Below, one piece after another: positions 16,400 through 49,963 of a DNA stretch of 64,000 nucleotides. A model generated the notes under the pieces. That model was not told where the DNA came from and did no database searches. It saw only the letters and a list, made by a program, of their open reading frames with translations. This stretch comes from Macrostomum hystrix (lineage: Eukaryota; Animalia; Platyhelminthes), in NCBI GenBank assembly GCA_950097015.1, contig CATNEN010000033.1:620001-684000 (forward strand), given 5' to 3'. How positions within the stretch are numbered: position 1 is the first letter of the stretch; every line of letters starts with the position of its first letter. Made by a program: the position numbers and the translations under genes.

Positions 16400-16620
16400 G
16401 AAAAGACTGATATGTTCTAAAAACGAAGGTAAGAGCAGTATTTTTGCAAAAGTTATTGAAGTAGTGTGCATGGCTACATCTTATGGTATTTTCGCGAAAA
16501 TACTGATATGATATTAAACAAAGGTAGTTGGTGGTATTTTTGCAAAAGTTATTGAAGTAATGTGCATGGCTACATCAATTATGCAGTATTTTCGTGAAAA
16601 TACATGCATATTATTAGACG
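16400..16620. repeat. Short palindromic array (about 2 units)
   Basis: GGTATTTTCGCGAAAATAC and GGTATTTTTGCAAAAGT units as in 23.5-24.3 kb. Confidence 0.8.
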
Positions 16621-19178: not shown

Positions 19179-19448
19179 ATGTCAGCATTTCGTGGCCGTG
19201 GAAAGAAGGCTCGTGTGGATGCCAGCATTGCTACATCGGATTCTAATGGTCTACGCCAGACTAGGATCGTGGACTACTTTAGATCTGAGCAGTCAACCGA
19301 TCGTCCTACTGGCAACTCAATTAGACCGAGTGGGCAAGCAGCATCGGCATCATTCGCAGCACTGGCAGGAACGGCTGGCCGGGCATCGGCTGCCTTCAAT
19401 GTTCCCCGCCGTGCAGTAATACAGCAGCAACAGCAACCGCAGCAGCAT

Positions 19449-19487
<39 letters not shown>

Positions 19488-22400
19488 ACTGTTATTAAAA
19501 CCGCAGTTCAGAAGCGTCGACGTGTCCGATCGACTCTACGCAAGCGGACGCGTGTAGTTGTCGACTTGGATGCTTCGTCTAGCACTACATCGTCGTCTGA
19601 TGCTGAAGACACTGGCGTTGGATCTTTGGTAGCCATGCGACAGCCTCTGGTTATTGCCGCACAATCAATTGGTGGCGCCGGCGACCATGCTAATCGCATA
19701 GAGTCCACGCCTAAAGTGCTATCATCTGAAGATGACTCAGCGGACGACTTGCTAGCAGACGACGTACAGCTGGAGATTGTGGACGAGTGGACGAGCAATA
19801 CAGACAATGTAGAGTCGAATACTGCCCCTGTTTTGACGGCTTCTAATAGTTCAGCCTTGTCATCGCAGCTAGTCGATGATAAGTACAAAACAGAGGTGGC
19901 AGAATTATTGCGCGTAAATGGCGAGTCGACTATTCCTAAAAATAGTGCCGCACTTGGTGCCTGTCCGACTTCGCCAGATTATGCGCCTCGCTCTACACCG
20001 GCAATGTCTGTCATCGAGAATGGGACAACATCCGATGCTGATGAACCAGTTCGCGCTGTATTCTCTCCAGCGTATGTCGACGCTTCTCAACCAAAAGCGC
20101 AACAGTCGGGACGACTGCAGCAATCGCAGCAGCAGCAGCAGCAGCAGCATCAACAGCGAGAGCAACAACCGCAGCAACAGCCGCAGCAGCAGCAGTGGCG
20201 GCAGCAGCTGCTGCAGCAGATACAAGGGCGTGAACGGCAGCAGCAAGATGATGGCGTGGCATTTGCTCCGATAGCCGATGAATATGCGTTGTGTCGTTCG
20301 ACATCACCACTTCTACGGCTATGTCCTCGAGCTCCAATTACCGACTACGCCTCTTTAACAGCAGAGGGCAGGTCGGTTCTTATGACTAGAAGGACGCTAC
20401 ATCTTATAGAGATTGCATTCATCTCGAGCGATGTGGAAAAATTCAAGGCGTTTCTAGAAGATGAATTGGTAGCTCCATGTGCACAGTTTGCCATCGGCGC
20501 AACATCATGTATTCAGGTTGACATGCTGACCAGCGAAGAAATCCGAGCGCGTCGTCAGCAGAAATACAACATGTCAATCCGTGAATGTTTAGGAGCTCCG
20601 AATCATCCCAATGGTTTGCTGATGTTCCTGAACCTGCGCCAACCAGAAGATGGTTACACTGTTTACTGCGGACTGCATGCCCTTTTGATGGAATCTGCGG
20701 AAGCTTCGGCCTACCTGCATCCTACAATGTGTAGAATGACAGTGTCTGGTGTACGCAGTGCGTCAAGTGCAATTAAGCTAGTTACCAGTACGGACGAGTT
20801 TCCAGCTCTTTTCCGCGTTTCTACTCAAGAGTGCAGCTTGCTGACCAAGGCCTTTTGCTGGGTTGCTGCTCATGAGACGTCATCTACTGAGCCTTTGCTA
20901 GATAGTGGCTTCATGTTCGAACACTTTCGTGTCAGACAAGAGCTCAGCGATTACTTTAAGGTGACTCAGATGAAACGCGTAATAGCAACAGAGGTGCTAG
21001 CTGGTTGCCAAAACTGTCGCCCTACTGCCGCTGCCGCCGCCGCCGCTGCTGATGATGCTGCAACAGCCGACTATGCGAGGACGACCTTGCCTACTCAGCT
21101 GGAGGTATGCAAAATATTATAATACATGACATTTTTTAGCACACGTACGAGTATTGATCATTGAATTTTTGCTGTTGTTTTAATTCAAATAATTATTACT
21201 TTTGGACAATTAATTAATTAATTGTATGCGAACCTACCTAACAACACAACAGGTCTCTGCTGCTGCTGCTGATGTTGCTGCTTCCGCTGCTACTGCTGTT
21301 CAAGTATTTGATGCCGCCGTCGCTCATGTTCCCCGGCTGATCGCCGCCGCCACCAACGTGTGCCCAACTGTAAAGGCTGTGTGCAGCGCGTTGCAATTGC
21401 CAACTGGTGTCGTCTATCTATACGGCCCGTCTGGCGTTGGGAAGACACACTCTGTGCACAGTTTGCCATCGGCGCAACATCATGTATTCAGGTTGACATG
21501 CTGACCAGCGAAGAAATCCGAGCGCGTCGTCAGCAGAAATACAACATGTCAATCCGTGAATGTTTAGGAGCTCCGAATCATCCCAATGGTTTGCTGATGT
21601 TCCTGAACCTGCGCCAACCAGAAGATGGTTACACTGTTTACTGCGGACTGCATGCCCTTTTGATGGAATCTGCGGAAGCTTCGGCCTACCTGCATCCTAC
21701 AATGTGTAGAATGACAGTGTCTGGTGTACGCAGTGCGTCAAGTGCAATTAAGCTAGTTACCAGTACGGACGAGTTTCCAGCTCTTTTCCGCGTTTCTACT
21801 CAAGAGTGCAGCTTGCTGACCAAGGCCTTTTGCTGGGTTGCTGCTCATGAGACGTCATCTACTGAGCCTTTGCTAGATAGTGGCTTCATGTTCGAACACT
21901 TTCGTGTCAGACAAGAGCTCAGCGATTACTTTAAGGTGACTCAGATGAAACGCGTAATAGCAACAGAGGTGCTAGCTGGTTGCCAAAACTGTCGCCCTAC
22001 TGCCGCTGCCGCCGCCGCCGCTGCTGATGATGCTGCAACAGCCGACTATGCGAGGACGACCTTGCCTACTCAGCTGGAGGTATGCAAAATATTATAATAC
22101 ATGACATTTTTTAGCACACGTACGAGTATTGATCATTGAATTTTTGCTGTTGTTTTAATTCAAATAATTATTACTTTTGGACAATTAATTAATTAATTGT
22201 ATGCGAACCTACCTAACAACACAACAGGTCTCTGCTGCTGCTGCTGATGTTGCTGCTTCCGCTGCTACTGCTGTTCAAGTATTTGATGCCGCCGTCGCTC
22301 ATGTTCCCCGGCTGATCGCCGCCGCCACCAACGTGTGCCCAACTGAACTGTAAAGGCTGTGTGCAGCGCGTTGCAATTGCCAACTGGTGTCGTCTATCTA

Positions 22401-22877
22401 TACGGCCCGTCTGGCGTTGGGAAGACACACTCTGTGCAAAGCCATCTCGGTTCTACGAAAGTGCTGAATATCCAGGTGCAGAAGCGGTCTAACACGTTTA
22501 TGTTTGACAAGCTCTGCGAGACTATACACACTGCCATGTTTATTGACGAGCTACGCCCGCAACTGTTTGATGACACATCTGAAGTCATGTGCACACTACT
22601 TCGTTTGGTCAATGGAGACACTTTTGAAGTCAATGCTAAATACAAGGCTATTCGACACGTCTCTTGGCTCAATCGACTGTTAGTGCTTGCTGGGCATGCT
22701 CCGGTCAGTGCGTATTCGATGGACTTTCAGCGCCGATTAGAACCGACACCTGATGGGCACAAGCGTCCGGTAGTTGCCATCTTCATTGGTCATTCCCTCA
22801 GTACCGACTACCAATGCGATGGACAATGCCACCCAATACGCAATGTGTTTGGCGATCACCCGGACCGGCGAGTATGA
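19179..22877 (+). pseudogene. Rep-like/SF3 helicase paralog 1, disrupted by a ~975-bp internal tandem duplication
   Basis: Intron 21105..21252; 20478-21452 repeated with TGTGCA at the junctions; 5-nt insertion near 22345. Confidence 0.85.
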
Positions 22878-23479
22878 GCGACAAGACGGTGCTGTTAGCA
22901 GGTTTTTTTTACACCAAACTGCCTGCATGCTGCTATTTTATCGACTATATTTTTACTCGGTCATTCAGTCAGTCTTTCAGCTGTTTTTTTATATTTTTTA
23001 CTGTTTCATTCTGTTTTTGTATGCAATTTTATAATTAGTCATACAAATAAAATCAATTTATATGCTCAGTTTTGAGCTTTTATTGTTGTAAAGTAGGTAA
23101 TTGCTACTTCTGTTGCAAAAAATCATATTTCTTGCTAATTGTAGTCAATTGACTGATTAATGAAGCCCAACACGAATACAATAAATGTATTGAGCGTTTG
23201 CATGCATAAAAATACAAACAATAGTTACGATAATCAGTAGATTTATAATATAACTGCATAATGAATCATAGTGATTGTATTATTTTACATTCTGACGTTA
23301 TGACGCCTCTGCTTCCTTCAGCTGTGGCATACAAAAGCTCGTCCTCAACTGGGTCTTATGTGCAATTTTTCTATATATAGTATTACTATCTTCAAACGAA
23401 GGTATATGCAAAGTGTCAAAGTATTGATTAATAAAATTCATTTATAGGTGTTATCGCGAAAAAAAAACGACTTCTAAAC

Positions 23480-24320
23480 CGAAAGTAAATACTGAATTTT
23501 AGCGAAAAGACTGATATGTTCTCAAAACGAAGGTAAGAGCAGTATTTTTGCAAAAGTTCTTAAAGTAGGTGTGTGCGTGGCTACATGGTATGGTATTTTC
23601 GCGAAAATACTGCTATGCTATTAAACAAAGGTAGTTGGCGGTATTTTTGCAAAAGTTATTAAAGTAGGTAGTGGTGTGCATGGCTACATATTATGGTATT
23701 TTCGCGAAAATACTGCTATGCTATTAAACAAAGGTAGTTGGCGGTATTTTTGCAAAAGTTCTTAAAGTAGTGTGCATGGCTACATATTATGGTATTTTCG
23801 CGAAAATACTGCTATCCTATTAAACGCAGGTAGTAAAGGTAGTTTGCGGTATTTTTGCAAAAGTTATTAAAGTAGTGTGCATGGTTACATCTTTAGGTAT
23901 TTTCGCGAAAATACTGCTATGCTATTAAACAAAGGTAGTTGGCGGTATTTTTGCAAAAGTTATTAAAGTAGGTTATATGCGTGGCTATATGTTAAGGTAT
24001 TTTCGCGAAAATACTGCTATGCTATTAAACAAAGGTAGTTGGCGGTATTTTTGCAAAAGTTATTAAAGTAGGTTATATGCGTGGCTATATCTTATGGTAT
24101 TTTCGCGAAAATACTGCTATGCTATTAAACAAAGGTAGTTGGCTGTATTTTTTGCAAAAGTTCTTGAAGTTGTATGCGTGGCTATATCTTAAGGTATTTT
24201 CGCGAAAATACTGCTATGCTATTAAACAAAGGTAGTTGGCGGTATTTTTGCAAAAGTTATTAAAGTAGGTTATATGCGTGGCTATATCTTAAGGTATTTT
24301 CGCGAAAATACATGCATATT
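23480..24320. repeat. Tandem array of ~100-bp units, each with palindromes GTATTTTCGCGAAAATAC and TTTTGCAAAA
   Basis: 8 perfect cores counted between 23593 and 24310, plus a degenerate lead unit. Confidence 0.95.
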
Positions 24321-24798
24321 ATTAGACTAAGTATCTTGTACATTTTTAACCATAGACACATTTAGTATTTCTGCAAATTGCCAAGAGTCATGAGTGCATT
24401 TTTTTCGCGAAAAGACTATATACTATCTATATATTGTATTGAATACCTGTGAATGAAAAATAATGACAGTTTTTTTGCAAAAATACTAACGATACGATGA
24501 TGAACATATTTTTGCGAAAGAACATGTTCTAAAACAAATACAAACTGCTGTATTTATGCGAAATTGCTTTGAGTATTAAAATAATATGAACGTTTACAAA
24601 CAAAAAAAATAGAAACAATAATGCTTACGTTTGTGCTTATGATTGTTGGTGATGGTATTTTCACGAAAATATTAGTGTATTTTCAATGACTAACAAAACA
24701 ACACCAATATGTATATCAAATCGTTATGATAATCAGAGGCTTTATTTATAAAATAACTGTAATGAATCATAGTTTCTGCATTATTTTATAATATAATT

Positions 24799-25638
24799 TC
24801 AAACGTATGCCTCCGCCTCTTCAGCTGCGGCATACAATAGGCAGTCGTCAGCTGGGTCAAATAAACAGCTACTGGCTGCCATCGCTGCCGCTGATGCTGA
24901 CGCCTCCGCCTCTTCAGCTGCGGCATACAAAAGCTCGTCATCAGCTGGGTCAAACAAGCAGCTACTGGCTGCCATCGCTGCCGCTGCTGCTGACGCCTCC
25001 GCCTCTTCAGCTGCGGCATACAATAGGCAGTCGTCAGCTGGGTCAAATAAACAGCTACTGGCTGCCATCGCTGCCGCTGCTGCTGACGCCTCCGCCTCTT
25101 CAGCTGCGGCATACAAAAGCTCGTCATCAGCTGGGTCAAATAAACAGCTACTGGCTGTCATCGCTGCCGCTGCTGCTGACGCCTCCGCCTCTTCAGCTGC
25201 GGCATACAAAAGCTCGTCATCAGCTGGGTCAAATAAGCAGCTACTGGCTGCCATCGCTGCCGCTGCTGCTGACGCCTCCGCCTCTTCAGCTGCTGCATAC
25301 AAAAGCTCGTCATCAGCTGGGTCAAACAAGCAGCTACTGGCTGCCATCGCTGCCGCTGCTGCTGACGCCTCCGCCTCTTCAGCTGCTGCATACAAAAGCT
25401 CGTCATCAGCTGGGTCAAAGCAATTGGCTGCCATCGCCGCTTCGACCTCTTCAGCTACGGCGTATAACAAATGGTCGTCTGCCAGGCCGAATACAAAACT
25501 GTATGTTGAATTGTATGTTTCATCATACCCGTAGTCATCATAGCCTGGCTCTTCATTCAGCTCAACGTCATCGTCGTGACAGTTGGATTTTTCCGCATCG
25601 TTTAGAGTTGGCCCTGATGATGATGTTGATGTAGGCAT
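24799..25638 (-). CDS. Acidic repeat protein AR (279 aa; seven 31-aa DPADDELLYAAAEEAE units)
   Basis: 93-nt period; ATG preceded by a TTTAAATA box; second copy at 61305. Confidence 0.75.
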   Translation of the reverse strand: MPTSTSSSGPTLNDAEKSNCHDDDVELNEEPGYDDYGYDETYNSTYSFVFGLADDHLLYAVAEEVEAAMAANCFDPADDELLYAAAEEAEASAAAAAMAASSCLFDPADDELLYAAAEEAEASAAAAAMAASSCLFDPADDELLYAAAEEAEASAAAAAMTASSCLFDPADDELLYAAAEEAEASAAAAAMAASSCLFDPADDCLLYAAAEEAEASAAAAAMAASSCLFDPADDELLYAAAEEAEASASAAAMAASSCLFDPADDCLLYAAAEEAEAYV

Positions 25639-25872
25639 GGCGAGACAATGGGGGCAGTATTTAAAATGCTTAACTTGTTTAATTTACTTAATTAATTGTC
25701 CAAAGTTTCAACTGCATTGATTACATATTCCCAATCACATAAGATTATCAGCAAGCTTGTTACCATAGACTAGCAATAGGGTTTTTAGTTGGTTACTTTA
25801 CTAAGGTAAGTGGCGTAACTTATTTACACATTTTAGATTCTTAATTATTGTTTCAAATAAAAAAACTACAAC

Positions 25873-26331
25873 ATGTCATCCCTGGGTGGGCGGCACAATG
25901 GCGGAGATCGAGATCGAGATATCGACAGAGAGGAACACAACTCTGGCAACGACAAACCGATCTCGTGCCCTACCGTCAGTAGCAGCACGGATGTCGTGAT
26001 TGGCACTGAGCGGCGTCGACGAAGGCACAGTTCGGATAGTAGTTCAGACTCCGATTTTGCTATTCTGCCTTCACGTCAACGTGTTCAGTACGTATTGCAT
26101 CGTCCAGGTGTCGTGCGCATTTACAATCAGAGATTTGGAATTGTGAACGCCAATCCGACACGTGATTTAGCCGGCCAATTGCAACTGCCGCAGCATGCGC
26201 AAGTGACCGATATACAGTCACCAGTTATAAGCAGCAGCAGCAGCAACAGTAACAATGGCGGCACTGGCACTGAAAGAGAGCGCGGCGATGCCAATCGTGC
26301 TGCTAATAACCCAGATTTGAATGACATGTAG
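25873..26331 (+). CDS. S3 small basic/Ser-rich protein with RRRRR NLS-like motif
   Basis: ACAACATG start; ORF kept in 4 copies with in-frame indels only. Confidence 0.65.
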   Translation: MSSLGGRHNGGDRDRDIDREEHNSGNDKPISCPTVSSSTDVVIGTERRRRRHSSDSSSDSDFAILPSRQRVQYVLHRPGVVRIYNQRFGIVNANPTRDLAGQLQLPQHAQVTDIQSPVISSSSSNSNNGGTGTERERGDANRAANNPDLNDM

Positions 26332-26841
26332 CAATTCTTTTGTTATGCACTGTTGCCATTACTTATAATGAAATTAATTAACTGATTAATGTAATTAAAA
26401 GTTGGTATTTGATTAACACATCTAAGTATTCAAAGTCGACAGTTCATGATGCCTGCAAATGTTTTAAACTACTTTTACATACACTAGCTCTCGTTCACCT
26501 TCACGTGGTATATTCAAAGCATAAGAGTTTGCCGTCACTATTGACAATATATTGTCGCGTTTACCATTAATCATAATCAGATGACTGATGAGATCAGTCA
26601 GTAATAAAATATTAATACGCGAACACAGATGTGTGCAGGTAGTCAATCGTTTATTATTAATACGGTTATTATTAAATTTCACCAATACATATAGAGTATA
26701 AATATATATAGAATTTCATTGGTTGAACAAATAATCGTGCCATTCTACAATTAGTCTGATTTGCAAAGTCGCGAGAGCAAAAATAAACGTGTAAACTATA
26801 ATACATAAAATTCTGCATATAAATTCTGTATTTTACAGCAT

Positions 26842-27222
26842 TCATTGTTCGATGTACCAGTAGCGAACTCCATGTATGATGAGCTGGAGTTCAGCTTGGG
26901 CTTCCTCTAAAAGCTCTAGCACTTCGATGATGTCTTGTGCTTCATCGTCTCTTACACCAGTCACGGACAAGACAGCCTGATAGTCTTCTGCTGACCGGTG
27001 CTTTTGCAGCCATTGTTGAGTGCGCCGTAATAATAAACATAAGTCATTAGCGTTGTACTCTGCATTTGGAACACCGCGTTGCAAACTAGGTAGCTGCTCG
27101 AAGCACCCTCGATGCGCTATGAACCGGCCAATGCAATCTATGCGACAGCTGAGAAAGAGTTGAAATACGCGCGGCTGAAGATACATTTGTACTAACTGCA
27201 TCTGATCGGCAATTAACGACAT
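26842..27222 (-). CDS. S1 protein (126 aa, unknown function)
   Basis: Five copies, three intact; homologous to S1b. Confidence 0.75.
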   Translation of the reverse strand: MSLIADQMQLVQMYLQPRVFQLFLSCRIDCIGRFIAHRGCFEQLPSLQRGVPNAEYNANDLCLLLRRTQQWLQKHRSAEDYQAVLSVTGVRDDEAQDIIEVLELLEEAQAELQLIIHGVRYWYIEQ

Positions 27223-27434
27223 GTTCAGTCAGTTAGTAAATCAAGTAAAGCAAAAAATCAAAACCCCCATAGAGAATATTTTATCGAACACAGGTGAGTC
27301 AGTCCACAGACAAATCAAATGAATACAGGCCAGTCTGGGTATTAAGAACAAGCAATATCTTATCGGCCAAGAAATCAGCCCACAACCAAACTTCGCACGT
27401 CTGCTACAGTAACAGTCACTAAGTCAGCAAGCAA

Positions 27435-29598: not shown

Positions 29599-31077
29599 TC
29601 AATTGCCGCACAGACATTGTCGCGTCTTGATCAATCGGCCGTGTCTTGACACTGTCGTAGTCAATATATTGTGTGTGCATATACAATACGAGCGTCTAGA
29701 TGCATGCAAAGCATCAGTCGCAGGTATAGTCGATTGCGATGACTGCACATCACTTATTGACATTGCGACATCGTCGTCAAGGTCGGCGGTCAGAACCAAT
29801 TCTGCTGCGGCATCGGCATCTCCTTGCGGCACTGTCACATCAGATAACTGTTCATCCGAATCGTTGTTGACATCAGCAATGATGATCTCCATTGCGACAT
29901 CAAACATATCATCGATGTGACTTGCTTCGGAATGGGCAGCGAAATCCGATCCAGCAGCAGCAGCAACACAATCCGTATTGGTAGACAGAAATTGCATAGC
30001 GGCAGGTTGCATCAAGTCGAGCAGAATCTGCGCCATTTCAATGTCATCACCGTGACCGGATGATGTACCAATACACACTGACTGCGTGCTGACATTGGCT
30101 TCGATTGAAACATCGGTCACACCGTTTTGTGCACTGACACCAACTGTCGCTGTTGTTACTCTTGGCGCACAGACAAGAATAAAAACAGGTAGCGGCACCG
30201 GAACGAAATACGGCACCTCGACAGTTGGAATCGGCAACATAGGCATCGCTGGTGATCCGATTGGCTCAATTTGCAACATTGGCATTGATGGCGATGGTAC
30301 TGGCGAGTGATCCGATTGGATTGTTTCTGCTGCTGCTTCAATCGCATTGTGATTAAGCGGAGTAGATGTACAAATTGGATGCCGTACTGATCCAATTGAC
30401 ACGCTGTCCGCTTGGCTCACATGTTCAGCAGGCTCGTCAGTACTTGTTGCATAGATGATGCCTGATTCAGCTGCGCTATCTTCTATGATGATAGTTTCTG
30501 CTGGCTGCTCTGCTGATGGCTGCTCTGCTGCTGGCTGCTCTGCTGCTGGCTGCTCTGCTACGGGCTGCTCTGCTACTGGCTGCTCTGCTGCTGGCTGCTC
30601 TGCTGCTGGCAGTCGACGGGCAATGTAGCGCTCGTGCATATAGTCGACAATCTCGCCGACCACAGCTGGTAGTGGATCCAGTTGTTCAAGCTGGACCACT
30701 TCGCCCATTGCCGCTGCTCCCGCCACTGCCACTGGCTGAGCTGGTTGGCCACCGACGCGACGCTGCGGATTCCGCTTACATCTATATAGATGATGCAACA
30801 TGTTGGACGTTATTTTGTTGCAATGCGGACACGCTAGCACACGTCCACCGGCAGCGACATCCACACCAGCCCGCTGTAGTTGCAGCATCTTCCAGACGGC
30901 ACTTCCACGCTCCTTAACCGACGCGAATAGCGATGGCCTTTGACCAACAGGTAGGACTGTCCAGTCAAATTCGTCATGGACAGCTTTATGCGCCTCTATA
31001 AAATGTCTTCGCATCATATTGGCGCGGATTTGCTGGCCGCAGAAATGGCAGAAGCGGAGTCCGTTGTTGTCTTCCAT
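29599..31077 (-). CDS. Zinc-finger protein Z1 (492 aa): C2H2 plus C2HC fingers, AEQP repeats, acidic tail
   Basis: CHFC-x11-H-x4-H and CPHC...HHLYRC; N-terminus homologous to 35886 gene. Confidence 0.8.
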   Translation of the reverse strand: MEDNNGLRFCHFCGQQIRANMMRRHFIEAHKAVHDEFDWTVLPVGQRPSLFASVKERGSAVWKMLQLQRAGVDVAAGGRVLACPHCNKITSNMLHHLYRCKRNPQRRVGGQPAQPVAVAGAAAMGEVVQLEQLDPLPAVVGEIVDYMHERYIARRLPAAEQPAAEQPVAEQPVAEQPAAEQPAAEQPSAEQPAETIIIEDSAAESGIIYATSTDEPAEHVSQADSVSIGSVRHPICTSTPLNHNAIEAAAETIQSDHSPVPSPSMPMLQIEPIGSPAMPMLPIPTVEVPYFVPVPLPVFILVCAPRVTTATVGVSAQNGVTDVSIEANVSTQSVCIGTSSGHGDDIEMAQILLDLMQPAAMQFLSTNTDCVAAAAGSDFAAHSEASHIDDMFDVAMEIIIADVNNDSDEQLSDVTVPQGDADAAAELVLTADLDDDVAMSISDVQSSQSTIPATDALHASRRSYCICTHNILTTTVSRHGRLIKTRQCLCGN

Positions 31078-31269: not shown

Positions 31270-31585
31270 CATATATAGTATTTTCGCGAAAATACTGATA
31301 TGCTCTATAAACAAAGGTAAGGGCAGTATTTTTGCAAAAGTTCTTGAAGTAGTGTGCATGGCTACATCTTATGGTATTTTCGCGAAAATACTGCTATGCT
31401 ATTAAACAAAGGTAGTTGGCGGTATTTTTGCAAAAGTTCTTAAAGTAGTGTGCATGATTACATCTTTGGTATTTTCGCGAAAAGACTGCTATGCTATTAA
31501 ACAAAGGTAGTTGACGGTATTTTTGCGAAAATTCTTAATGTAGTGTGCATGGCTACATCTTATGGTATTATCGCGAATGCAGATA
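31270..31585. repeat. Palindromic array (3 full units plus 1 degenerate) upstream of Z1
   Basis: Same ~97-bp unit. Confidence 0.9.
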
Positions 31586-31876: not shown

Positions 31877-32282
31877 TTACTGCTCAATTCGATATCGGCG
31901 GCTCCGGAGCAACTCTCGCAGTCTAGCCCTTTGCTGTACGCCGCGCCAGTAGTCCAGGCCGTGTAGAATGTGCTGCAGCTCCAAACATGTGTCCTCCAGC
32001 AGGCCTAGCAGCTCGGCCAAGTCGAAGGCCTCGTTCTCTGTTAGGCAGGTCACCTCAAGGATGGTCTCGTAGCCCGCAGCTGTCTTGTGTTGTAGCAGCC
32101 AGTCCAGGAGGCTCTTCATCAGGGTGTGCAGCTGGGTGACGTTCAGCTAAGCAGTCGGGCAGTGGCGCTGCAGGCAGGTTAGCTGCTCCAATCGTCCTCG
32201 GTAAGTCAGGAACGGGGCCAGACAGGCGATGTCGCATCTGGCCAGGAGTGCCACGGTGGCCGGCGAGCCGAACAGCGCCACA
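31877..32282 (-). pseudogene. S1b copy, 5'-truncated, with internal TAG
   Basis: Matches 49964..50383; GAG>TAG at 32147-32149. Confidence 0.8.
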
Positions 32283-32284
32283 AG

Positions 32285-32440
32285 GTTCTTAAAGTAGTGT
32301 GCATGGCTACATCTTATGATATTTTCGCGAAAATACTGCTATGCTATTACCGTAAACAAAGGTAGTTAGCTGTATTTTTGCAAAAGTTATTAAAGTAAGT
32401 AGTGTGCATGGCTACATATTATGGTATTTTCGCGAACGTA
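32285..32440. repeat. Short palindromic array
   Basis: Two CGCG and two TGCA cores. Confidence 0.8.
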
Positions 32441-32835
32441 GATACGTATTCTCAGACAAAGTGACTTGTACTTTCTTACCATCGACAAATTTAGTATATT
32501 TCTGCTAATTGTCAATAATCACGAATGATTTTTTCGTGTATCTGTGGCTTTTAAGAAAACGAGAATAGTTTAATCTCAGTTTAATCAGATGATAATCAAA
32601 TGATTTCATTTGTTAATTTATTTATTTACTAACGAAATAATCACAGTGTTGACAATCATTAGCATCTTAACAATATATAAGAGAGCAACAAACAGAACAT
32701 ATGAGATTCTCGGTTGTAAAGGGACGGGTATTAGTGGGGGTATCACAATTGACACAATTGATAATTGATAATTTTGGCAAATCAGACAATCAGCACATAT
32801 AAAGTCAGGTGACACGACTGGGACAATATGAGCAT

Positions 32836-35800
32836 TCAGATGTCCAGTCTAGTTCTCGAACTGATCAGGCGCCCAGATCGCGTCCTGTATTCCGTTCGAC
32901 GAACCATGAGTAGCTCAGAATCCGAGCTGGTCTCATTGTCATTGCTGACGTGCTGTTGTTCACCATCATCACCTTCTTCGTCGATATCGTCGTGAACGTT
33001 GCCTTGTCCAGCCGATGCTCCAAACATCGGCGGTTGACTAAGACTGCGTCGTCTAGACGATGTAGACGAAATAGGCGATGGTGTTGCTGAATCGATGGCC
33101 GGCTTTGTCGACTCGGTGTTGTCCGTTGTTGAACATCTAGGACTAACCGTAGCGGGTCGCATTGTCGACATTCGAGGTCGCTTCTTGTCAGTGGCCTTGC
33201 AAATGGACGACCGTCGAGTGCGTCGCTTGCGTGTGCGTTGACTATGTGGCATCACAATGTCATCAGCAGGTAGAGGAGATGCAGCCGATGAATTGGTTGC
33301 GTCCAGATCAACGCTACAGGCGGCAGAGCGACGACGATTCGTGTCGTTTTCGGCTGTTGGATGTCGTTGATGTCGACGATCAAGTGGCCGATTGTGACAG
33401 AATGTCTCGAAGCATCCTCTGACGTCGTCGGCGACCATCAGATTGGCCTGCTGTTTGGCCAGGCGTCCATACGCATTGACGACACAGTTGCGCGATGTGT
33501 CGTACAGTGGCACCAGCTGGTCTAGCTTGTCGGGATGCGCATGCACATATGCCGACAGTACATTTCGACGACCATCGCCCATGCGATAGGGCCGATCGAT
33601 GACCAACTCGGCGCCCTGCTTGACAAGCGTGCTGAAACTTGTCGAGTCACGCTGCTTGCCACGATGCGTAGGAAACAGCAGACATTTGCCTGGCCTGACA
33701 TGGATGTTGCACTCGGCGAAGTATGGCAATAGAAAGTTGTCTATCCATTGCAGTAGACATTCGCCGACTTTGCGTGGCGCAGTCCAGCTTGCACCTTTAC
33801 CACGACCGCCCTTTTTGTGTGCCACTTCGGTAGGCGGCAGGACTGTGACAATGGTGGAGGACGTTGATACGCCGCTATTGAGTGCAGCATCCAAATAGCA
33901 ACGCCGAATCGCGACCCATGGACGTAGTCGATTGGCATGGACAATTGCTGCACAGAAGAAGGCCAGTTCACGCGTGATCGGCATAATAAATGTATTCCAT
34001 TTGCCGACGACGTTGGCCATTCGACGTGCACATTGTCCAATGCGACCCCAGTAGCCCTTCACGGGTAGATGAGACCACGAATGTTTGGCGACCATATCAA
34101 TCAGGCAGTCTAGCCGGTTGTGAATGATGCGCCATTCGTCAGCGGTCAGGAACTTATCCGTGTAGGACAGCTGGCGTTCGTCATCGCGCAGGTGATAAAT
34201 ATTCTCTTGCCGTTGACGAATCAATCCAATGCAAGCCTGTACATGTTAAAGGGTTATGAAAGAGAAAGTACATGCAGTAGCTTCTACAATTGTTCGTGAT
34301 ATATCAACTAACATAGTATACAATATGCGACACAACAACACTGCTCACCATGATTGATTCGATGCGGCTAGTCAACAGACCAGATACTGCAGTCTGATGA
34401 TAGAGAATACCATCTTTGCGCGGGTCAGGACAGGCAGGCAATTCTGACGCGGCCTTGACAATGTCGGCATGCACGTTGGCAAACAATCCATCTGGTGGCG
34501 AGGTCAATTGGAACGCGTTCATAACACTAGGAGCACCGAAGTCGTTGTTGGCTGCTAGAAACTTCTTCGCGCCGCTCAATATGTTATGAAGCTCGTTCAT
34601 TCGCTGTCCAACAGTCGATGGTTTCCAGATATGGCGCTTCACCATCTCGTCCAAATCGAATTGGATGCGCGCTGGATTGATGAACCACATCTCGACTGTG
34701 ACATTGATTGCGTGTAGGAGACGACTAGTTGTAGCATGATAGTTCCGCTGGATTGCTTTCCTACGGCTAACATGCGATGCGTTCTCTTCTACACAGCAAT
34801 GACCCTTGAACCAGATGTCGCCGACATTGTCTAGTTGCTTGTACATGTGTTCAGATGCAACGTGGTAGTCTGGGCCGTCGAAAACAACAAGCCGAGACGT
34901 CTTGTGCCTCCGTTGCAATACAAGCTCCTCTTCACTGACAGAAGCATCAGTATTTTCCACGTCAGATTTAGAGGTCTGAGTCTCTGCTTGTCGCTGACTG
35001 ACAGCATTGGTGACTCCGACCGGAACATAGTCTGACGTATACTGGAGAATTGCTTCTGTCAGATTGACCAGATTCTGCAAGCTAGTACACACGCGCGGAT
35101 GCTCAGCGTTGTGGGCTTTCTGCAGAATCTCGTTGAGGCCGGCCGCATTCAGACGCAGTCCATTGATAAACTCTGTTTGACAGGAAAGTTATAAATATTT
35201 GTTGATTATTTTTTATGTCTTTACGTGTAAATTAAAAAATGTAAAGGCATGTACAACAATATTTTAGACCACTTACTGATCGCTGCCACATTGTCGTTGA
35301 CATTAATGAACTCCGGCATCGTACTCGTTTCGTTTTGCAGTCGCTCGATGTCGTGACTGACAATATCGGCCGTGAACGAAGATGGTCCGGCCCGATCGAA
35401 ACTCGCCAACACCGGTGCTACTGACAGTGAGCATTGATCTGACTGAGAAGTAGCTTTGGACTGTCCTGCAGAAGACGATCCCGCAGAAGACGCTAACACG
35501 ACAATAGGCAGCTCAATGTTTGCACCCGCGTCTATCAAATCAGACGAAGAGTCGTCGCTGTCACTTGACGAACGGGTTGCATTTGCTACCTCTGTAATTG
35601 CCGGTTTACGCTTGCATGACCTGGCAATGTGTTTAGTGAGATGCCGAACACCTTTGCCACAGTATTGACAATAAGGCGAATCTGGATTGGATCCATCCCG
35701 ACGTAACCGGATGATATTCCATACAGTTTTCGCCTTAATGTGATACGATGCAGTCGCTGCGGGTCGTCCAACCTCCGGAATTGTGCTCCAATCAAAACTC

Positions 35801-35886
35801 GAAACGAAGTCTGAATGATTTGTAATAAAGTGCCTTACAACATTCTTCTTCCGAATTGAAGCTTTGCAGACTGGGCACGTATCCAT
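32836..35886 (-). CDS. Zinc-finger plus tyrosine-recombinase-like protein (944 aa; exons 35886-35277, 35172-34349, 34236-32836)
   Basis: Introns 35173..35276 (GTAAGT..CAG, phase 1) and 34237..34348 (GTGAGC..CAG, phase 0) join three ORFs in frame; WKPSTV, ANRLRP, HKK, LLFP, DGRR, DTS...NAY motifs in YR order. Confidence 0.7.
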
Positions 35887-36490
35887 TTCGCTGGTTATTG
35901 TTTGATGCTGTTCCAAAGTGCTTATGACAGAAGAACGTTTACACAGATTTGTAAGCGAGCGCGCTCGGCTTCTGACTTAAGCTGCTATCGTGACCCGTAC
36001 GACAGTTTAATCACATAAACTATCATTCAAGGTTTGTCTATGGCGAAAAAGCATAATATTGAACTCATAATATATTTAACGTTGCTATATTGTCTACTCA
36101 TAGTAGAGTAGGTAGTTTCGAACAGCAGATGAACATAAACACGAATAATTAATTGATTTCTGATTTATGTCAACAATTTTAATCTGTATGTTGAGAAAGC
36201 ACTTAAATTATTGTTGATTATTCCAGAGGTATTTTCGCAAAAGTACATATGTATTCTCAAACGAAGGTCCATGTAGTCTTTTTGCGAAAATACTTTAGTG
36301 TCAATCAATATGACTACTGTTTCTGATGGTATTTTCGAAAAAAAACATGTGTCCTAAACGAAAGTAAAGGCATTATCAAAAGAAGGTAACAACCGTATTT
36401 GAGCAAAAGTACGTTCATAATAATAATAAATATTTATTTTCATAAGTAGTAAATTATTAGCTGATTTTATTTATTTATAAAAATGTGTAT

Positions 36491-36562
36491 TAGTGACTGG
36501 GATTCGAACCCGAGCCACTGGTATCGTAAAAGAATGCTTGTGACCTGCACGCCAGATCACTA
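36491..36562 (-). ncRNA. tRNA-like putative Pol III gene, copy A (72 nt)
   Basis: TATAAATA at -33..-26, TGGCGTGCAGG A-box-like motif, GGTTCGAATCC B box, 7-bp terminal stem TAGTGAT/GTCACTA, T5 downstream; no canonical anticodon arm. Confidence 0.55.
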
Positions 36563-36761
36563 GCAATTGAATAGTGTGTTATCTGGCTATTTATATTGAT
36601 TTTCTTTCGGATGTTGGATAATGTAACGGAATGATAAGATTTATTGAGAGAATATAGATAATACTGCTGATATTGCTATCGCGAAAATTATTCAAATGTA
36701 GTACCGTTGTTCATACAGGGCTAGGTATTTTCGCGAAAGTACATTTTCGCGTTATACTTTT

Positions 36762-36959
36762 GCGGGCCAAGTCATTCGGGCCGAAAGCTACTGCCGCCAG
36801 CCCGCCCAGGACGTCCTTCTGCTCACCCTGCAGGGCCCGTTCAGGCGCGGCCAGGCTCGGACCCGCCGCTACGACTGCGTGCTGAGCGACGCCAGGGCGC
36901 CCGACACTGCCACCGGCGCGGACCATGTTCGCGCGCTGGCTCTGCGGCGCATCATTTGA
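36762..36959 (+). pseudogene. Start-less coding remnant (65 aa) of an unknown gene
   Basis: GC-rich island with strong GC3 bias reading AGQVIRAESYCRQPAQDVLLLTLQGPF...LRRII*. Confidence 0.45.
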
Positions 36960-37359
36960 CGCCGCCCCCTTACGTTTGGGGCTTGCTAAAATTGTTGTTG
37001 TTGTTTTGCGAAAGAACATATTAAGGTAAATATGTTCTTGCGTCTATGTAAACTCGTGCATTCGCGAAAGCACAATAAAATAGTTCAGGATCAGGACAAA
37101 GAGTTATATTAGTAATATTAGTACTTTCGCAAACAGGACTACATGCTCCGCAGTGCCCGAGTGCGAAAAGACATAAGCTTAGCTGTTATAATTATAGAAA
37201 TACACTACGGAGATTAAAAAAAAGGTCATTTGGCATATCCGTCCGTATTTTCGCGAAATGACCACATGAGCTGTTCTATTTTTAGAAATACACTACGGAG
37301 ATCAAAAAAAGGTCATTCGACATTATTTGCGAAATCAATCACGAAGTTGAGGCAGATTG

Positions 37360-37641
37360 ATTGAAGATATTGTCCGCCCATAGACTTCTATTGAAAACTG
37401 ACTGAAGATATTGTCCGCCCATTGATTTCTATTGAAGTGAAGATAATGTCCGCCTACTGAAGGAAGATATTGTCCCATGTAGTTAATATGCTAGTGCCAT
37501 AGACGGTTGGGTCTGTAGTGCGGCCTTGAGTAGCGGATTTCCGACTTTCAGCACTTGTACATAGGGGAATCCACAGTCTAAGCTGGGGTCCACCGGACAA
37601 AATCTTCAGTTTGTTGGGGTCCGCAGGACATTATCTTCAAT
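37360..37641. mobile_element. MITE-like insert with 16-bp TIR ATTGAAGATATTGTCC
   Basis: TIR pair with 1 mismatch; internal subrepeats of the TIR; no TSD seen. Confidence 0.55.
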
Positions 37642-37644
37642 GCA

Positions 37645-37912
37645 TATTTTGTTGCAATGCGGACACGCTAGCACACGTCCACCGGCAGCGACATCTACAC
37701 CAGCCCGCTGTAGTTGCAGCATCTTCCAGACGGCACTTCCACGCCCCTTAACCGACGCGAATAATGATGGCTGTTGACCAACAGGTAGGACTGTCCAGTC
37801 AAACTCAAAAACATAAACAGCTTTATGTGGCTCTATAAAATGTCTTCACATCATATTAGCGCGGATTTGCTGGCCGCAGAAATGGCAGAAGCGGAGTCCG
37901 TTGTTGTCTTTG
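37645..37912 (-). pseudogene. 5' remnant of Z1 (ATG lost)
   Basis: Closest to the copy at 25..292; ATG>ATC and an indel. Confidence 0.8.
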
Positions 37913-38623
37913 ATTGCAGCTTTATAAATATAGTCGTTCGCTGGCTAGCTTGCTGAATAATCGACAGACTGAGTTGTGGCTGAATTTTAATTATCGATTT
38001 GCGTGCGCGCGCGCGCATATATTTACCAAGCACTGTCCATATTCTGTACAGAGAAGCAGTCGGACACATAGACATAGACAGACATCGTCAACTGGGTCTA
38101 AGCTATTTCCTTATATAGTATTTTCGCAAAAATACTGATATGTTATTAAACGAAGGTAAGGGCGGTATTTTTGCAAAATTTCTTGAAATTGGAAAATAAT
38201 GGCATTTTTTCGAAAATACTAACGATACGATGGACGAACAATTTTTTTCGCAAAAATGCTGATATGCATTTTTGCGAAGAGGGCAGCAAAGAGGGCAACA
38301 TGCAGTACTGAAAAGAATTGATGATTAATATTTTCACAATAAAGACCTGTTCTAAAACCAATATGAAATGCTGTATTTGTGCGAAAGTACTTTAAGTATT
38401 CATGATGACTATATCTAATGGTAATCAATAACCAAATATGACTTGACTTCATTATATTTTATTATTATTCACGCCGCAAATACAATTTTAAACAGGTTCA
38501 CTCATGTATATTTGCTTGAGCGAATTAATTTGGTTAATTAAATAGCTGGCATTAATTTAACGGCGAACAGGAAACTACAATTAGCTGTATTAAGTCTAGC
38601 TAAAACTAGTGCTGCTGCTGCTG

Positions 38624-39043
38624 CTACTGCTCCATTTGATATTGGCGACTCCGGAGCAACTCTCGCAGTCTAGCCCTTTGCTGCACGCCGCACCAGTAGT
38701 CCAGGCTGTGCAGAATGTGCTGCAGCTCCGAGCAGGAGTCCTCCAGCAGGCCTAGCAGCTTGGCCAAGTCGAATGCCTCGTTCTCTGTTAGGCAGGTCAC
38801 CTCCAGGATGGTCTCGTAGCCCGCAGCTGTCTGGTGTTGTAGCAGCCAATCCAGGAGGCTCTTCAGCAGGGTGTGCAGTTGGGTGGCGTTCAGCTAAGCA
38901 GTCGGGCAGTGGCGCTGCAGGCAGTTTAGCTGCTCCAATCGTCCTCGGTGCGCCAGGAACGGGGCCAGACAGGCGATGTCGCATCTGGCCAGGAGTGCCA
39001 CGGTGGCAGGCGAGCCGAACAGCACCACAGGATGCGCATTCAT
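38624..39043 (-). pseudogene. S1b copy with internal TAG
   Basis: 420 nt, colinear with 49964..50383; TAG at 38894-38896. Confidence 0.85.
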
Positions 39044-40357
39044 CGTGGTTCTACGCAACCAATAATGTCGTGAGTGCAACAGTAGTGCGTCTAACACTAG
39101 CAGAAGTAAAAAATTTTTCGAGAAAAAAACATATGTTCTTAAACGAAGGAAACGGCAGTATTTTTGCAAAAGTTCTTGAAGTAGCGTGCATGGCTACATC
39201 TTATGGTGTTTTCGCAAATGCAGATACGTATTCTCAGACAAAGTAACTTGTACTTTTTTACCATAGACACATTTAGTATTTCTGCAAATTGCCAAGATTC
39301 ATGCATGTATTCTTTTCGCGAAAAGAAAATATGTTCTAAATTAAATACTTATAAATGAAAAAAAGTGTCAGTTTTTGCGAAAATACTAACGATAATATGA
39401 AGACTATATTTTTCGCGAAAACGCTCATATGTTCTCAAAATGAAGGTAACGGCAGTCTTTTTGCACCATGCAGTACTCAAAGAAATTGATTATTATTAGT
39501 TCCACATTATCTTTGCGAAAATTTAAGTATTCTAAAACGAATACGAAATGCTTTATAGGTGCGAAAGTACTTTGAGTATTCATGATGACTATTTGTAATG
39601 GAAATCAAATATCAAATATGACTTACTTGAACTATTCACATATTTATTTTCTTATTATTTAATGTTTTCCTGTTCTTTATTAGGTGTTCATTATTTCAGA
39701 GGTATTTTTGCGAAAGTACATACACATTCTCAAACGAAGGTTAAGGTAGTCTTTTTGCGAAAATATTTTATTAGTGTTAATATGATTACTGCTTCTGATG
39801 GTATTTTCGCGAAAAGACATGTGTCCCATATGTGTATTTTCGCGAAAACACAGATGTATTTGAAACGATGGTCATACACTGCCGTACTTATGCAAAATTA
39901 CCTGTAAGACAAGAAACTTAGATCAAGCATAATCAAGCAACCTTAAAAGAGTATATTCACAAAACTGCTGATTAATATTGTGTTGCTTTATTATTCACGT
40001 CAGACGCTAGAAATTGCAACAGGTTCACTGCCATGCATATTTGCTTTGCATGATTATCTGGCGCATACCTGCGGCTTTTAAGAAAACGAGAATAGTTTAA
40101 TAGTAATACCAGATGTTAATCAAATTATTTTATAATCTGTTAATTAATTTATTTACAAACGAAATAATCACAGTGTTGACAATCATTAGCATCTTAACAA
40201 TATATAAGAGAGCAACAAACAGAACATATGAGATTCTCGGTTGTCAAGGGACGGGTATTAGTGGGGGTATCACAATTGACACAATTGATAATAGTTTGGC
40301 AAATCAGACAATCAGCACATATTAAGTCAGGTGACACGACTGGGACAATATGAGCAT

Positions 40358-41218
40358 TCAGATGTCCAGTCTAGTTCTCGAACTGATCAGGCGCCCAGAT
40401 CGCGTCCTGTATGCCGTTCGACGAACCATGAGTAGCTCAGAATCCGAGCTGGTCTCATTGTCATTGCTGACGTGCTGTTGTTCACCATCATCACCTTCTT
40501 CGTCGATATCGTCGTGAACGTTGCTTTGTCTTCCTGATGCTCCATGCATCGGCGGTTGACTAAGACTGCGTCGTCTAGACGATGTAGACGAAATAGGCGA
40601 TGGTGTTGCTGAATCGATGGCCGGCTTTGTCGACTCGGTGTTGTCCGTTGTTGAACATCTAGGACTAACCGTAGCGGGTCGCATTGTCGACATTCGAGGT
40701 CGCTTCTTGTCAGTGGCCTTGCAAATGGACGACCGTCGAGTGCGTCGCTTGCGTATGCGTTGACTATGTGGCATCACAATGTCATCAGCAGGTAGAGGAG
40801 ATGCAGCCGATGAATTGGTTGTGTCCAGATCAACGCTACAGACAGAGCGACGACGCTTCGTGTCGTTTTCGGCTGTTGGATGTCGTTGATGTCGACGATC
40901 AAGTGGCCGATTGTGACAGAATGTCTCGAAGCATCCTCTGACGTCGTCGGCGACCATCAGATTGGCCTGCTGTTTGGCCAGGCGTCCATACGCATTGACG
41001 ACACAGTTGCGCGATGTGTCGTACAGTGGCACCAGCTGGTCTAGCTTGTCGGGATGCGCGTGCACATATGCCGACAGTACATTTCGACGCCCATCGCCCA
41101 TGCGATAGGGCCGATCGATGACCAACTCGGCGCCCTGCTTGACAAGCGTGCTGAAACTTGTCGAGTCCCGCTGCTTGCCACGATGCGTAGGAAACAGCAG
41201 ACATGGTGATGCAGGCAT
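40358..41218 (-). CDS. Chimeric ORF: AR promoter and first codons fused in frame to the C-terminal part of the recombinase gene
   Basis: MPASP then CLLFPTHRGK...RTRLDI; upstream DNA matches that of 25638. Confidence 0.65.
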   Translation of the reverse strand: MPASPCLLFPTHRGKQRDSTSFSTLVKQGAELVIDRPYRMGDGRRNVLSAYVHAHPDKLDQLVPLYDTSRNCVVNAYGRLAKQQANLMVADDVRGCFETFCHNRPLDRRHQRHPTAENDTKRRRSVCSVDLDTTNSSAASPLPADDIVMPHSQRIRKRRTRRSSICKATDKKRPRMSTMRPATVSPRCSTTDNTESTKPAIDSATPSPISSTSSRRRSLSQPPMHGASGRQSNVHDDIDEEGDDGEQQHVSNDNETSSDSELLMVRRTAYRTRSGRLISSRTRLDI

Positions 41219-45847: not shown

Positions 45848-46228
45848 TCATTGTTCGATGTACCAGTAGCGAACTCCATGTATGATGAGCTGGAGTTCAG
45901 CTTGGGCGTCCTCAAAAAGCTCTAGCACTTCGATGATGTCTTGTGCTTCATCCTCTCTTATACCAGTCACGAACAAGACAGCCATATAGTCTTCTGCTGA
46001 CCGGTGCTGTTGCAGCCATTCTTGAGTGCGCCGTAATAATAAGCATAACTCATTAGCGCTATACTCAGCATTTGGAACACCGCGCTGCAAACTAGGTAGC
46101 TGCTCGAAGCACCCTCGATGCGCTATGAACCGGCCAATGCAATCTATGCGACAGCTGAGAAAGAGTTGAAATATGTGCGGGTGAAGATACATTTGCACTA
46201 ACTGCATCTGATGGGCAATGAACGACAT
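45848..46228 (-). CDS. S1 protein copy
   Basis: Intact 126 aa. Confidence 0.75.
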   Translation of the reverse strand: MSFIAHQMQLVQMYLHPHIFQLFLSCRIDCIGRFIAHRGCFEQLPSLQRGVPNAEYSANELCLLLRRTQEWLQQHRSAEDYMAVLFVTGIREDEAQDIIEVLELFEDAQAELQLIIHGVRYWYIEQ

Positions 46229-48465: not shown

Positions 48466-49700
48466 TCAATTGCCGCACAGACATTGTCGCGTCTTGATCA
48501 ATCGGCCGTGTCTTGACACTGTCGTAGTCAATATATTGTGTGTGCATATACAATACGAGCGTCTAGATGCATGCAAAGCATCAGTCGCAGGTATAGTCGA
48601 TTGCGATGACTGCACATCACTTATTGACATTGCGACATCGTCGTCAAGGTCGGCGGTCAGAACCAATTCTGCTGCGGCATCGGCATCTCCTTGCGGCACT
48701 GTCACATCAGATAGCTGTTCATCAGAATCGTTGTTGACATCAGCAATGATGATCTCCATTGCGACATCAAACATGTCATCGATGTGACTTGCTTCGGAAT
48801 GGGCAGCGAAATCCGATCCAGCAGCAGCAGCAACACAATCCGTATTGGTAGACAGAAATTGCATAGCGGCAGGTTGCATCAAGTCGAGCAGAATCTGCGC
48901 CATTTCAATGTCATCACCGTGACCGGATGATGTACCAATACACACTGACTGCGTGCTGACATTGGCTTCGATTGAAACATCGGTCACACCGTTTTGTGCA
49001 CTGACACCAACTGTCGCTGTTGTTACTCTTGGCGCACAGACAGGAATAAAAACAGGTAGCGGCACCGGAACGAAATACGGCACCTCGACAGTTGGAATCG
49101 GCAACATAGGCATCGCTGGTGATCCGATTGGCTCAATTTGCAAAATTGGCATTGATGGCGATGGTACTGGCGAGTGATCCGATTGGATTGTTTCTGCTGC
49201 TGCTTCAATCGCATTGTGATTAAGCGGAGTATATGTACAAATTGGATGCCGTACTGATCCAATTGACACGCTGTCCGCTTGGCTCACATGTTCAGCAGGC
49301 TCGTCAGTACTTGTTGCATAGATGATGCCTGATTCAGCTGCGCTATCTTCTATGATGATAGTTTCTGCTGGCTGCTCTGCTGCTGACTGCTCTGCTGATG
49401 GCTGCTCTGCTGCTGGCTGCTCTGCTGCTGGCTGCTCTGCTACTGGCTGCTCTGCTGCTGGCTGCTCTGCTACTGGCTGCTCTGCTGATGGCAGTCGACG
49501 GGCAATGTAGCGCTCGTGCATATAGTCGACAATCTCGCCGACCACAGCTGGTAGTGGATTCAGTTGTTCAAGCTGGACCACTTCGCCCATTGCCGCTGCT
49601 CCCGCCACTGCCACTGGCTGAGCTGATTGGCCACCGACGCGACGCTGCGGATTCCGCTTACATCTATATTGATGATGCAACATGTTGGACGTTATTTTGT
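48466..49700 (-). pseudogene. Z1 copy lacking its N-terminal zinc finger
   Basis: Similarity to 29599..31077 stops near 49700. Confidence 0.8.
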
Positions 49701-49963
49701 TTCAAATGGCGCAGTTGTGACAGCAGCGGAATGCAGTTCGAACATTCTATGAAATGAGTTTCATGCAGGGTATTATCTTACGTTACATGATGACTGCAGC
49801 CCCATGCCACTGCTGCACCTGAGTTAGGGACCCATTTCGCACTGTGATGATCGATCGAAATTTTTCCAATATACTGCGGGATATATAGTGACTATAGCGG
49901 TATTAGCTAGTGTTAGACGCGTTGCTGCTGCACGTACGACATTGTTGGGTGCGTAGAACCACG

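Follow-up and report, generated by a model that had tools for sequence, protein, structure and literature searches.

The locus described here raises the question of whether three open reading frames (ORFs) on the minus strand of a flatworm contig encode one recombinase, and whether this enzyme mobilizes DNA. The stretch that was analyzed, referred to as the window, comprises 64,000 nucleotides of Macrostomum hystrix (GenBank assembly GCA_950097015.1, contig CATNEN010000033.1, positions 620,001 to 684,000), and the gene in question runs from window position 35886 down to 32836. An earlier note, made from the letters alone, had read it as a zinc-finger tyrosine recombinase of an atypical lineage. 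The analysis suggests that the gene encodes a eukaryotic tyrosine recombinase, which is likely to mobilize a Crypton-like DNA element and to represent a lineage not described so far. The protein is probably an active recombinase and would consist of three parts: an N-terminal double zinc finger, a helical core-binding-like domain and a C-terminal catalytic domain with the fold of Cre, Xer and lambda Int.

The gene and its parts are located as follows.

35277 to 35886, minus strand: exon 1, with the ATG at 35886-35884; 203 codons plus one base, encoding the zinc-finger module and a Ser/Asp-rich linker

35173 to 35276, minus strand: intron 1, 104 nt, gtaagt...acag, phase 1

34349 to 35172, minus strand: exon 2, 274 full codons, the C-terminal two thirds of which encode the predicted helical core-binding-like domain with a conserved W-x-[PA]-S-T motif

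34237 to 34348, minus strand: intron 2, 112 nt, gtgagc...acag, phase 0

32836 to 34236, minus strand: exon 3, 466 codons plus TGA, encoding the predicted catalytic domain and then a basic disordered C-terminal tail

35221-35916, 34304-35092 and 32836-34224, minus strand: the listed ORFs behind exons 1, 2 and 3, respectively

33175 to 33240, minus strand: basic clusters RTRKRRTRR ... KKRPR in the tail, which from their sequence may act as a nuclear localization signal

The three-exon gene model was confirmed. Read-through of either intron meets stops within ∼20 codons (after 19 codons in intron 1), and splicing is therefore required. With 203 codons, one split codon, 274 codons and 466 codons the product has 944 amino acids (aa), the length given in the earlier note, and both introns have GT..AG borders. 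The note had also placed the three ORFs in different frames; the second is indeed shifted, but the first and third share a frame modulo 3, so that two frames are used and not three. All three exons are collinear with a single 1084-aa protein of Macrostomum lignano, the UniRef entry P0008, which carries the name 'C2H2-type domain-containing protein'. Exon 1 aligned with its residues 114-236 (E = 4e-25), exon 2 with residues 481-671 (E = 1e-31) and exon 3 with residues 673-950 (44% identity, E = 4e-78). The exon 2/3 splice site is confirmed to the residue, because a second M. lignano protein, P0001, crosses this junction gap-free, at equal length and with similar residues (RIDAVY-AQLGRVSRQQ-DNRYHL versus RIESIM / ACIGLIRQRQ-ENIYHL). 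The proposed exon 1/2 junction, which falls within a linker that is not conserved, is consistent with the GT-AG borders, the reading frame and the collinearity.

Relatives of the protein were sought with exon 3 in a HMMER scan that covered 1.84 billion cluster representatives. Only four of these matched, and two of the four are M. lignano fragments, whose cluster includes P0008. At least seven near-identical M. lignano entries were found, and word-index searches for further homologs added one fragment. The contig does not resemble human DNA, and the closest relatives of the protein are from a flatworm. The distribution is patchy: besides the flatworm, it includes two environmental or read-set sources, the metagenome protein P0004 and the Logan contig L001 (SRR31628394). 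No relatives were identified in the scans of metagenome contigs, viruses and prokaryote genomes, and literature searches returned no description of such a family. The family is very rare, and standard domain models do not recognize it. In L001 one in-frame stop was observed at 1263-1265, between the Arg I and Lys regions, in a segment for which the family offers no alignment; it is probably an intron at a site where the window gene has none.

The N-terminus of the protein carries the zinc module.

35602 to 35886, minus strand: bipartite zinc module of ∼95 aa, C-x2-C-x11-H-x4-H followed by C-x2-C-x9-H-x4-C (C2H2 + C2HC)

In the alignment of P0008 with the paralogous window copies, C4, C7, H19, H24, C73, C76 and H86 were invariant, and the closing C91 was conserved in the rows that cover this position. 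Compared with profiles of PDB entries, the module gave weak matches, all of them to classical C2H2 fingers.

To compare folds, template-free AlphaFold models were made of residues 480-960 of the homolog P0008 and of window exon 3, from alignments of 8-9 rows each, and these were searched with Foldseek against PDB and BFVD. The region with the predicted catalytic fold is the following.

33397 to 34011, minus strand: predicted tyrosine-recombinase catalytic domain, exon 3 residues ∼76-280, from AlphaFold and Foldseek

The P0008 model had a mean predicted local distance difference test score (pLDDT) of 58, with values of 70-90 across the core of the C-terminal domain, and the core-binding-like region, which corresponds to part of exon 2, was modelled as a helical bundle at pLDDT 54-66. 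The exon 3 model was poorer (mean pLDDT 53). In PDB, ranks 1 to 36 of the P0008 model were all tyrosine recombinases (XerA, Cre, Tn1549 Int, XerH and XerD), of which XerA was the best match (E = 0.018, probability 0.99). At lower ranks a bacterial type IB topoisomerase, a Staphylococcus aureus integrase and the recombinase-fold proteins YopR and MrpR were observed. The alignments of this model extended over more than 430 columns and thus covered both the core-binding and the catalytic domain. In BFVD, the top matches were phage and algal-virus integrases or DNA_BRE_C proteins (best E = 2.3e-3, probability 1.0). The first matches of the exon 3 model were an S. aureus integrase, the C-terminal domain of XerD, Cre and XerH. 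As a test of its own claim, the earlier note had named a fold unlike that of lambda Int as the refuting outcome; the models instead retrieved nearly only tyrosine recombinases and proteins with the type IB topoisomerase fold. Scores being marginal and the confidence of the models low to moderate, the unanimity of the matches, and not any individual score, is what suggests that the protein has the catalytic-domain fold of the tyrosine recombinase superfamily.

A bacterial topoisomerase IB and another topoisomerase, at PDB ranks 37 and 47, are among these matches, and an enzyme of the type IB topoisomerase or telomere-resolvase kind was considered. This is extremely improbable: recombinases rank above throughout, with 36 recombinase chains first, and the match to Cre and XerA includes both domains. 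Furthermore, the His expected before the Tyr in the R-K-R-H-Y pentad of type IB topoisomerases is a Thr here, and the gene is repeated and partly truncated.

The candidate catalytic residues of the recombinase could be assigned to the following codons in exon 3.

33928 to 33930, minus strand: R103 in ANR, the candidate Arg I, shared without change by the window, M. lignano and L001

33814 to 33816, minus strand: K141, candidate hairpin Lys (in EV-x-HK), invariant in four lineages

33565 to 33576, minus strand: D221-G-R223-R224, with Asp at the His I position and R224 as candidate Arg II; R223 and R224 invariant in four lineages

33496 to 33498, minus strand: T247, at the His/Trp III position, invariant in three lineages and aligned to XerD H270

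33469 to 33471, minus strand: Y256, candidate nucleophile, invariant in the three lineages that cover the position and aligned to XerD Y279

Conservation was assessed across the window, M. lignano, P0004 and L001. These lineages are only 24-44% identical, yet the R, K, R and Y are invariant. Among the 112 columns covered by all four lineages 12 were invariant, and these include K141, R223, R224 and F188 of the LLFPT box; R103 was invariant in the three lineages that cover it, as were T247, S248 and Y256 in theirs. All motifs listed in the earlier note, the KPST helix, ANR, HKK, LLFPT, GDGRR and NAY, were present and conserved in homologs. Arg I, the hairpin Lys, Arg II and the Tyr follow each other in the order of the superfamily. 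In the P0008 model, the candidate Arg I lies in a loop following a long helix, the candidate Lys in a loop between strands E311-316 and E332-337, the D-x-x-R at a helix start and the candidate Tyr at a helix-helix junction ahead of the last long helix; as modelled, this placement is the canonical layout.

The register was compared with that of XerD, XerC, lambda Int and Cre using hhalign (P = 0.013, probability only 3%). LLFPT was placed on VLFPS, D221 and R224 on XerD H244 and R247, T247 on H270 and Y256 on Y279. A profile-profile comparison in global mode yielded no meaningful alignment. The His I position is occupied by Asp in three lineages and by Thr in one, and the His/Trp III position by Thr, so the replacement of both His by D/G and T that the note had proposed agrees with this alignment. 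In the best-supported register, the hexad would read R-K-D-R-T-Y. Both His sites are the least conserved positions of the tyrosine recombinase superfamily.

A recombinase fold might also be retained by a DNA-binding protein that no longer recombines. It would serve as a chromatin factor or regulator, comparable to the DUF3504 domains that WOC/ZMYM proteins acquired from Cryptons or to MrpR and YopR, two phage repressors. The replacement of both His and the presence of YopR and MrpR among the fold matches are consistent with this, and zinc fingers combined with a recombinase-derived domain are known from domesticated genes (PMC3212892). However, the domesticated DUF3504 proteins have lost the Tyr and the second Arg (PMC3212892), whereas all four residues are kept across the divergent lineages compared here, and the gene is present in several copies, including truncated ones. 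Such a non-recombining protein is therefore regarded as unlikely.

A second copy of the recombinase gene was identified in the window.

40066 to 41204, minus strand: 5'-truncated copy with the last 850 bp of the gene and ∼300 bp downstream; ORF 40358-41218; 96% nucleotide identity to 32539-33685

This copy ends inside the gene (33686-33690 / 41204), where another repeated unit starts, and the junction shows a few bases of microhomology and no recognizable site. Between the two copies, the catalytic part differed by three synonymous and no non-synonymous changes, and the disordered tail by ∼9 non-synonymous and two synonymous changes and one in-frame indel. The numbers are small, and the pattern would be as expected under purifying selection on the enzyme. 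The truncated second copy and the multiple flatworm paralogs point to a mobile element. No reverse transcriptase was found within the protein or in an adjoining gene in the window, the only reverse transcriptase being that of an unrelated Gypsy-like fragment 21 kb away. Because the gene is multi-copy both here and in the flatworm M. lignano, has no reverse transcriptase partner and lies within a nest of repeats, the enzyme of a Crypton-like element is considered the most likely identity. The role of integrase or resolvase suggested in the earlier note may apply, for an element that is itself not delimited.

Several results weigh against this assignment. None of the Foldseek matches in PDB or BFVD reached E ≤ 1e-3, their TM-scores (template modelling scores) were 0.2-0.43, and the mean pLDDT values of only 58 and 53 came from the shallow alignments mentioned above. 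When the exons and their relatives were compared with Pfam (PF00589, PF12012/DUF3504 and DUF3435), PHROGs and NCBIfam, no recombinase match was observed even at E ≤ 10, and PDB sequence searches with the single protein and with a profile gave nothing relevant. A profile of 10 recombinases aligned with the LLFPT box only (P = 0.04). Neither the His of H-x-x-R nor the His/Trp III is present, which lowers the claim and does not exclude it, and it would be unusual to find an Asp beside the scissile phosphate. Finally, the 64-kb window holds only one full copy of the gene, and no element termini, target duplications or empty sites were identified in it; the element ends are not readable because the stretch 33685-37645 is unique in the window.

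Some of these points could mean that the protein is not a tyrosine recombinase at all. The fold likeness would then be spurious, produced by a mostly helical model of low confidence, and the motifs would have arisen by chance. The Foldseek E-values all above 1e-3, the lack of matches to hidden Markov models (HMMs) and an hhalign probability of 1-3% would agree with this. Nevertheless, two independent models and two libraries yielded one fold family at nearly every top rank, and the invariant residues fall on the catalytic positions, follow their order and lie in the structural elements expected, which makes this explanation very improbable. The earlier note was right to call the lineage atypical, as no HMM library recognizes the protein.

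Alternatively, the protein could be an active recombinase that is domesticated by the host, or part of a locally amplified gene cluster, and would then not serve an autonomous transposon. The lack of identified element termini is consistent with this. Duplicated blocks form a mosaic across the window, with this gene, a gene with the zinc fingers only and other ORFs recurring in partly fixed order, and the solely synonymous changes in the catalytic part also fit this explanation. It is considered quite unlikely in view of the patchy phylogenetic distribution with matches in four of 1.84 billion cluster representatives, the truncation of one copy and the many near-identical M. lignano paralogs.

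For the favored enzyme of a Crypton-like element the following mechanism can be proposed. The double zinc finger would likely bind DNA sequence-specifically, and Y256 would attack a DNA phosphate activated by R103, R224 and K141, with Asp and Thr in place of the two usual His. A 3'-phosphotyrosine intermediate would be formed, followed by strand exchange via a Holliday junction. Mobility would be Crypton-like, in that a circle is excised and then reintegrated.

The comparison with known systems indicates where this protein would belong. Crypton DNA transposons (CryptonA, CryptonI, CryptonF and CryptonS; Goodwin, 2003) have recombinases that are recognized via DUF3504, which serves as their sequence criterion (Kojima and Jurka, 2011, PMC3212892; Glomhopper, PMC13465315). 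As in Cryptons, the gene is eukaryotic, a tyrosine recombinase is the sole enzyme and a reverse transcriptase is lacking. Crypton genes likewise often bear introns, lie in repeat-rich compartments and have ends that are hard to define. In contrast to Cryptons, the protein matched neither DUF3504/PF12012, in any family member, nor PF00589. It carries the N-terminal C2H2 + C2HC module, while animal Cryptons have no extra domain and fungal Cryptons have GCR1_C, and the His of the R-H-R-Y tetrad is an Asp. The short (4-6 bp) terminal direct repeats of Cryptons, which lack TIRs and LTRs, were not found here, the flanking stretch being the unique one given above. Judged by its sequence, the lineage appears to be novel, as it falls outside DUF3504, has a zinc module unknown in Cryptons and shows Asp and Thr at the His positions.

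The best structural matches are the prokaryotic and phage tyrosine recombinases XerA (5hxy), Cre, Tn1549 Int, XerD/XerH and lambda Int. They extend over both the core-binding and the catalytic domain, and the order and structural elements of their Arg, Lys, Arg and Tyr agree with those of the protein modelled here. Unlike these, the gene is eukaryotic and contains introns, ∼480 residues of zinc finger and linker precede the recombinase part, both His are replaced (Asp, Thr), and identity is 10-14% with no significant sequence similarity. In archaeal SSV-type integrases and poxvirus topoisomerase IB the His positions are occupied by Lys or Arg and activity is kept; the replacements there are basic, whereas the one at His I is acidic here. 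We know of no other case of an acidic residue at this position.

Among animal proteins, WOC/ZMYM2-4/QRICH1 likewise have zinc fingers followed by a recombinase-type domain. They combine MYM-type fingers with a Crypton-derived DUF3504 from which the catalytic Tyr and Arg have disappeared, and each is a conserved host gene in single copy (PMC3212892). The present gene, in contrast, is repeated and retains the catalytic residues. DIRS, Ngaro, PAT and VIPER retrotransposons are also eukaryotic mobile elements with a tyrosine recombinase, but these encode reverse transcriptase and RNase H beside it, while the 1084 residues of P0008 hold no reverse transcriptase region. A DIRS-type element was rejected, there being no adjacent reverse transcriptase, and for a Starship 'captain' (DUF3435) no Pfam match was obtained.

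The zinc module is also present without the recombinase in a neighboring gene type, which was identified by tblastn with P0008 residues 114-205 and by alignment.

29599 to 31077, minus strand: 492-aa gene that shares the N-terminal zinc module only

5-265, 37618-37887 (with an in-frame stop) and 48466-49683: further copies or fragments of this gene type

The 492-aa gene is located downstream of the recombinase gene and encodes the zinc module, behind which come a low-complexity (AEQP)n stretch and an acidic tail. A full copy of this gene type, a copy truncated at its 5' end and two fragments occur in the window. The 492-aa protein could be an accessory or regulatory partner of the recombinase. 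Another ORF family recurs beside the recombinase and zinc-finger genes, once inverted, and has no database match.

31877-32119 (minus strand), 45848-46228 (minus strand), 49910-50383 (plus strand) and 38616-39101: small conserved ORFs of 80-157 aa with the motif ...LDWLLQH...ILEVTCLTENEAFDLAELL...LHGLDYW...

Satellite arrays with palindromes bracket the recombinase gene.

32282 to 32536, unstranded: ∼100-bp satellite units with the GTATTTTCGCGAAAATAC-type palindrome, directly downstream of the gene

36186 to 36350, unstranded: ∼100-bp satellite units with the palindrome, located upstream of the gene; further ones at 36722 and 37245

16344-16934, 23451-24669, 31281-31531, 32322, 36279-37259, 38121-39848, 55919-56826 and 60042-61180: locations of the palindrome TTTTCGCGAAAA

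The same ∼100-bp satellite with its GTATTTTCGCGAAAATAC-type palindrome was also observed at 23699-24413 and 60139-60963. It consists of two related ∼50-bp halves, one with GTATTTTCGCGAAAATAC and the other with GTATTTTTGCAAAAG. The palindrome TTTTCGCGAAAA, counted by its 12-mer core with at most one mismatch, occurred 59 times in the window compared with 0.22 occurrences expected, and this core resembles a palindromic E2F-type site. The arrays separate most gene blocks, and the blocks between them recur in differing orders, once inverted. An integron-like 'cassette' interpretation of the palindromic satellite was found to be unsupported, as boundaries without a palindrome exist at the D unit (25623/41203/62063) and at the inverted E block (49906).

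A more far-reaching interpretation is that the gene is the founding example of an unrecognized superfamily of animal tyrosine-recombinase DNA elements apart from Crypton, DIRS and Starship, with an R-K-D-R-T-Y site, a zinc 'arm' that also stands alone and GTATTTTCGCGAAAATAC-type palindromes that might be its DNA partners. We regard this as doubtful, and palindromes as recombinase sites are a low-probability speculation because several block boundaries are without a palindrome. If true, the recombinase would shuffle or mobilize multi-gene blocks and not just itself.

The remainder of the window is eukaryotic and repeat-rich, with a Tc1-like element, a Gypsy-like fragment, satellites and a duplicated block of more than 8 kb.

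2791-4440: Tc1/mariner-type element, apparently intact, with 157-nt terminal inverted repeats (98% complementary) and a 378-aa ORF with helix-turn-helix and DDE_3

5865-11339, minus strand: Gypsy-like fragment of a long terminal repeat retrotransposon, unrelated to the recombinase gene; gag and aspartic protease at 9582-11339, end of the reverse transcriptase and start of RNase H at 8945-9514

12095-13437: a pair of directly adjacent minisatellites, with ∼15 copies of a 23-bp unit and ∼47 copies of an 18-bp unit

19017-27258 and 56833-63702: duplicated block of more than 8 kb, ∼37 kb apart, 96-99% identity

52873-53928: 351-aa ORF with the P-loop GPSGVGKT and a Walker B-like VIFLDE, weak AAA-type Pfam matches

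The duplicated block holds a 647/650-aa Gln-rich ORF, the satellite and a 93-bp tandem repeat with open frames on either strand, as well as a ∼2.2-kb unit with five occurrences in the window. This block may be a tandem segmental duplication or may represent the arms of a very large element. The 351-aa ORF lies within a GC-rich island at 50.9-54 kb, in which GC reaches 0.635, far above the remaining window, and it gave no PDB matches; it could be part of another element, perhaps one that encodes a helicase- or Rep-like protein. Scanning the window for tRNA genes and Rfam families gave no matches.

Among eukaryotic mobile elements, no class is rarer or less well understood than the tyrosine-recombinase DNA transposons. 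To our knowledge, nearly all those recorded in animals are Cryptons, identified via the DUF3504 model. As the protein keeps the catalytic Arg-Lys-Arg-Tyr and evades all sequence models, such elements would be under-counted in annotation. Because an Asp is conserved in place of His I, the family may serve as a natural test case for the contribution of the two 'His' positions to catalysis, and its zinc-finger targeting module might be worth considering in the design of tools for site-specific recombination.

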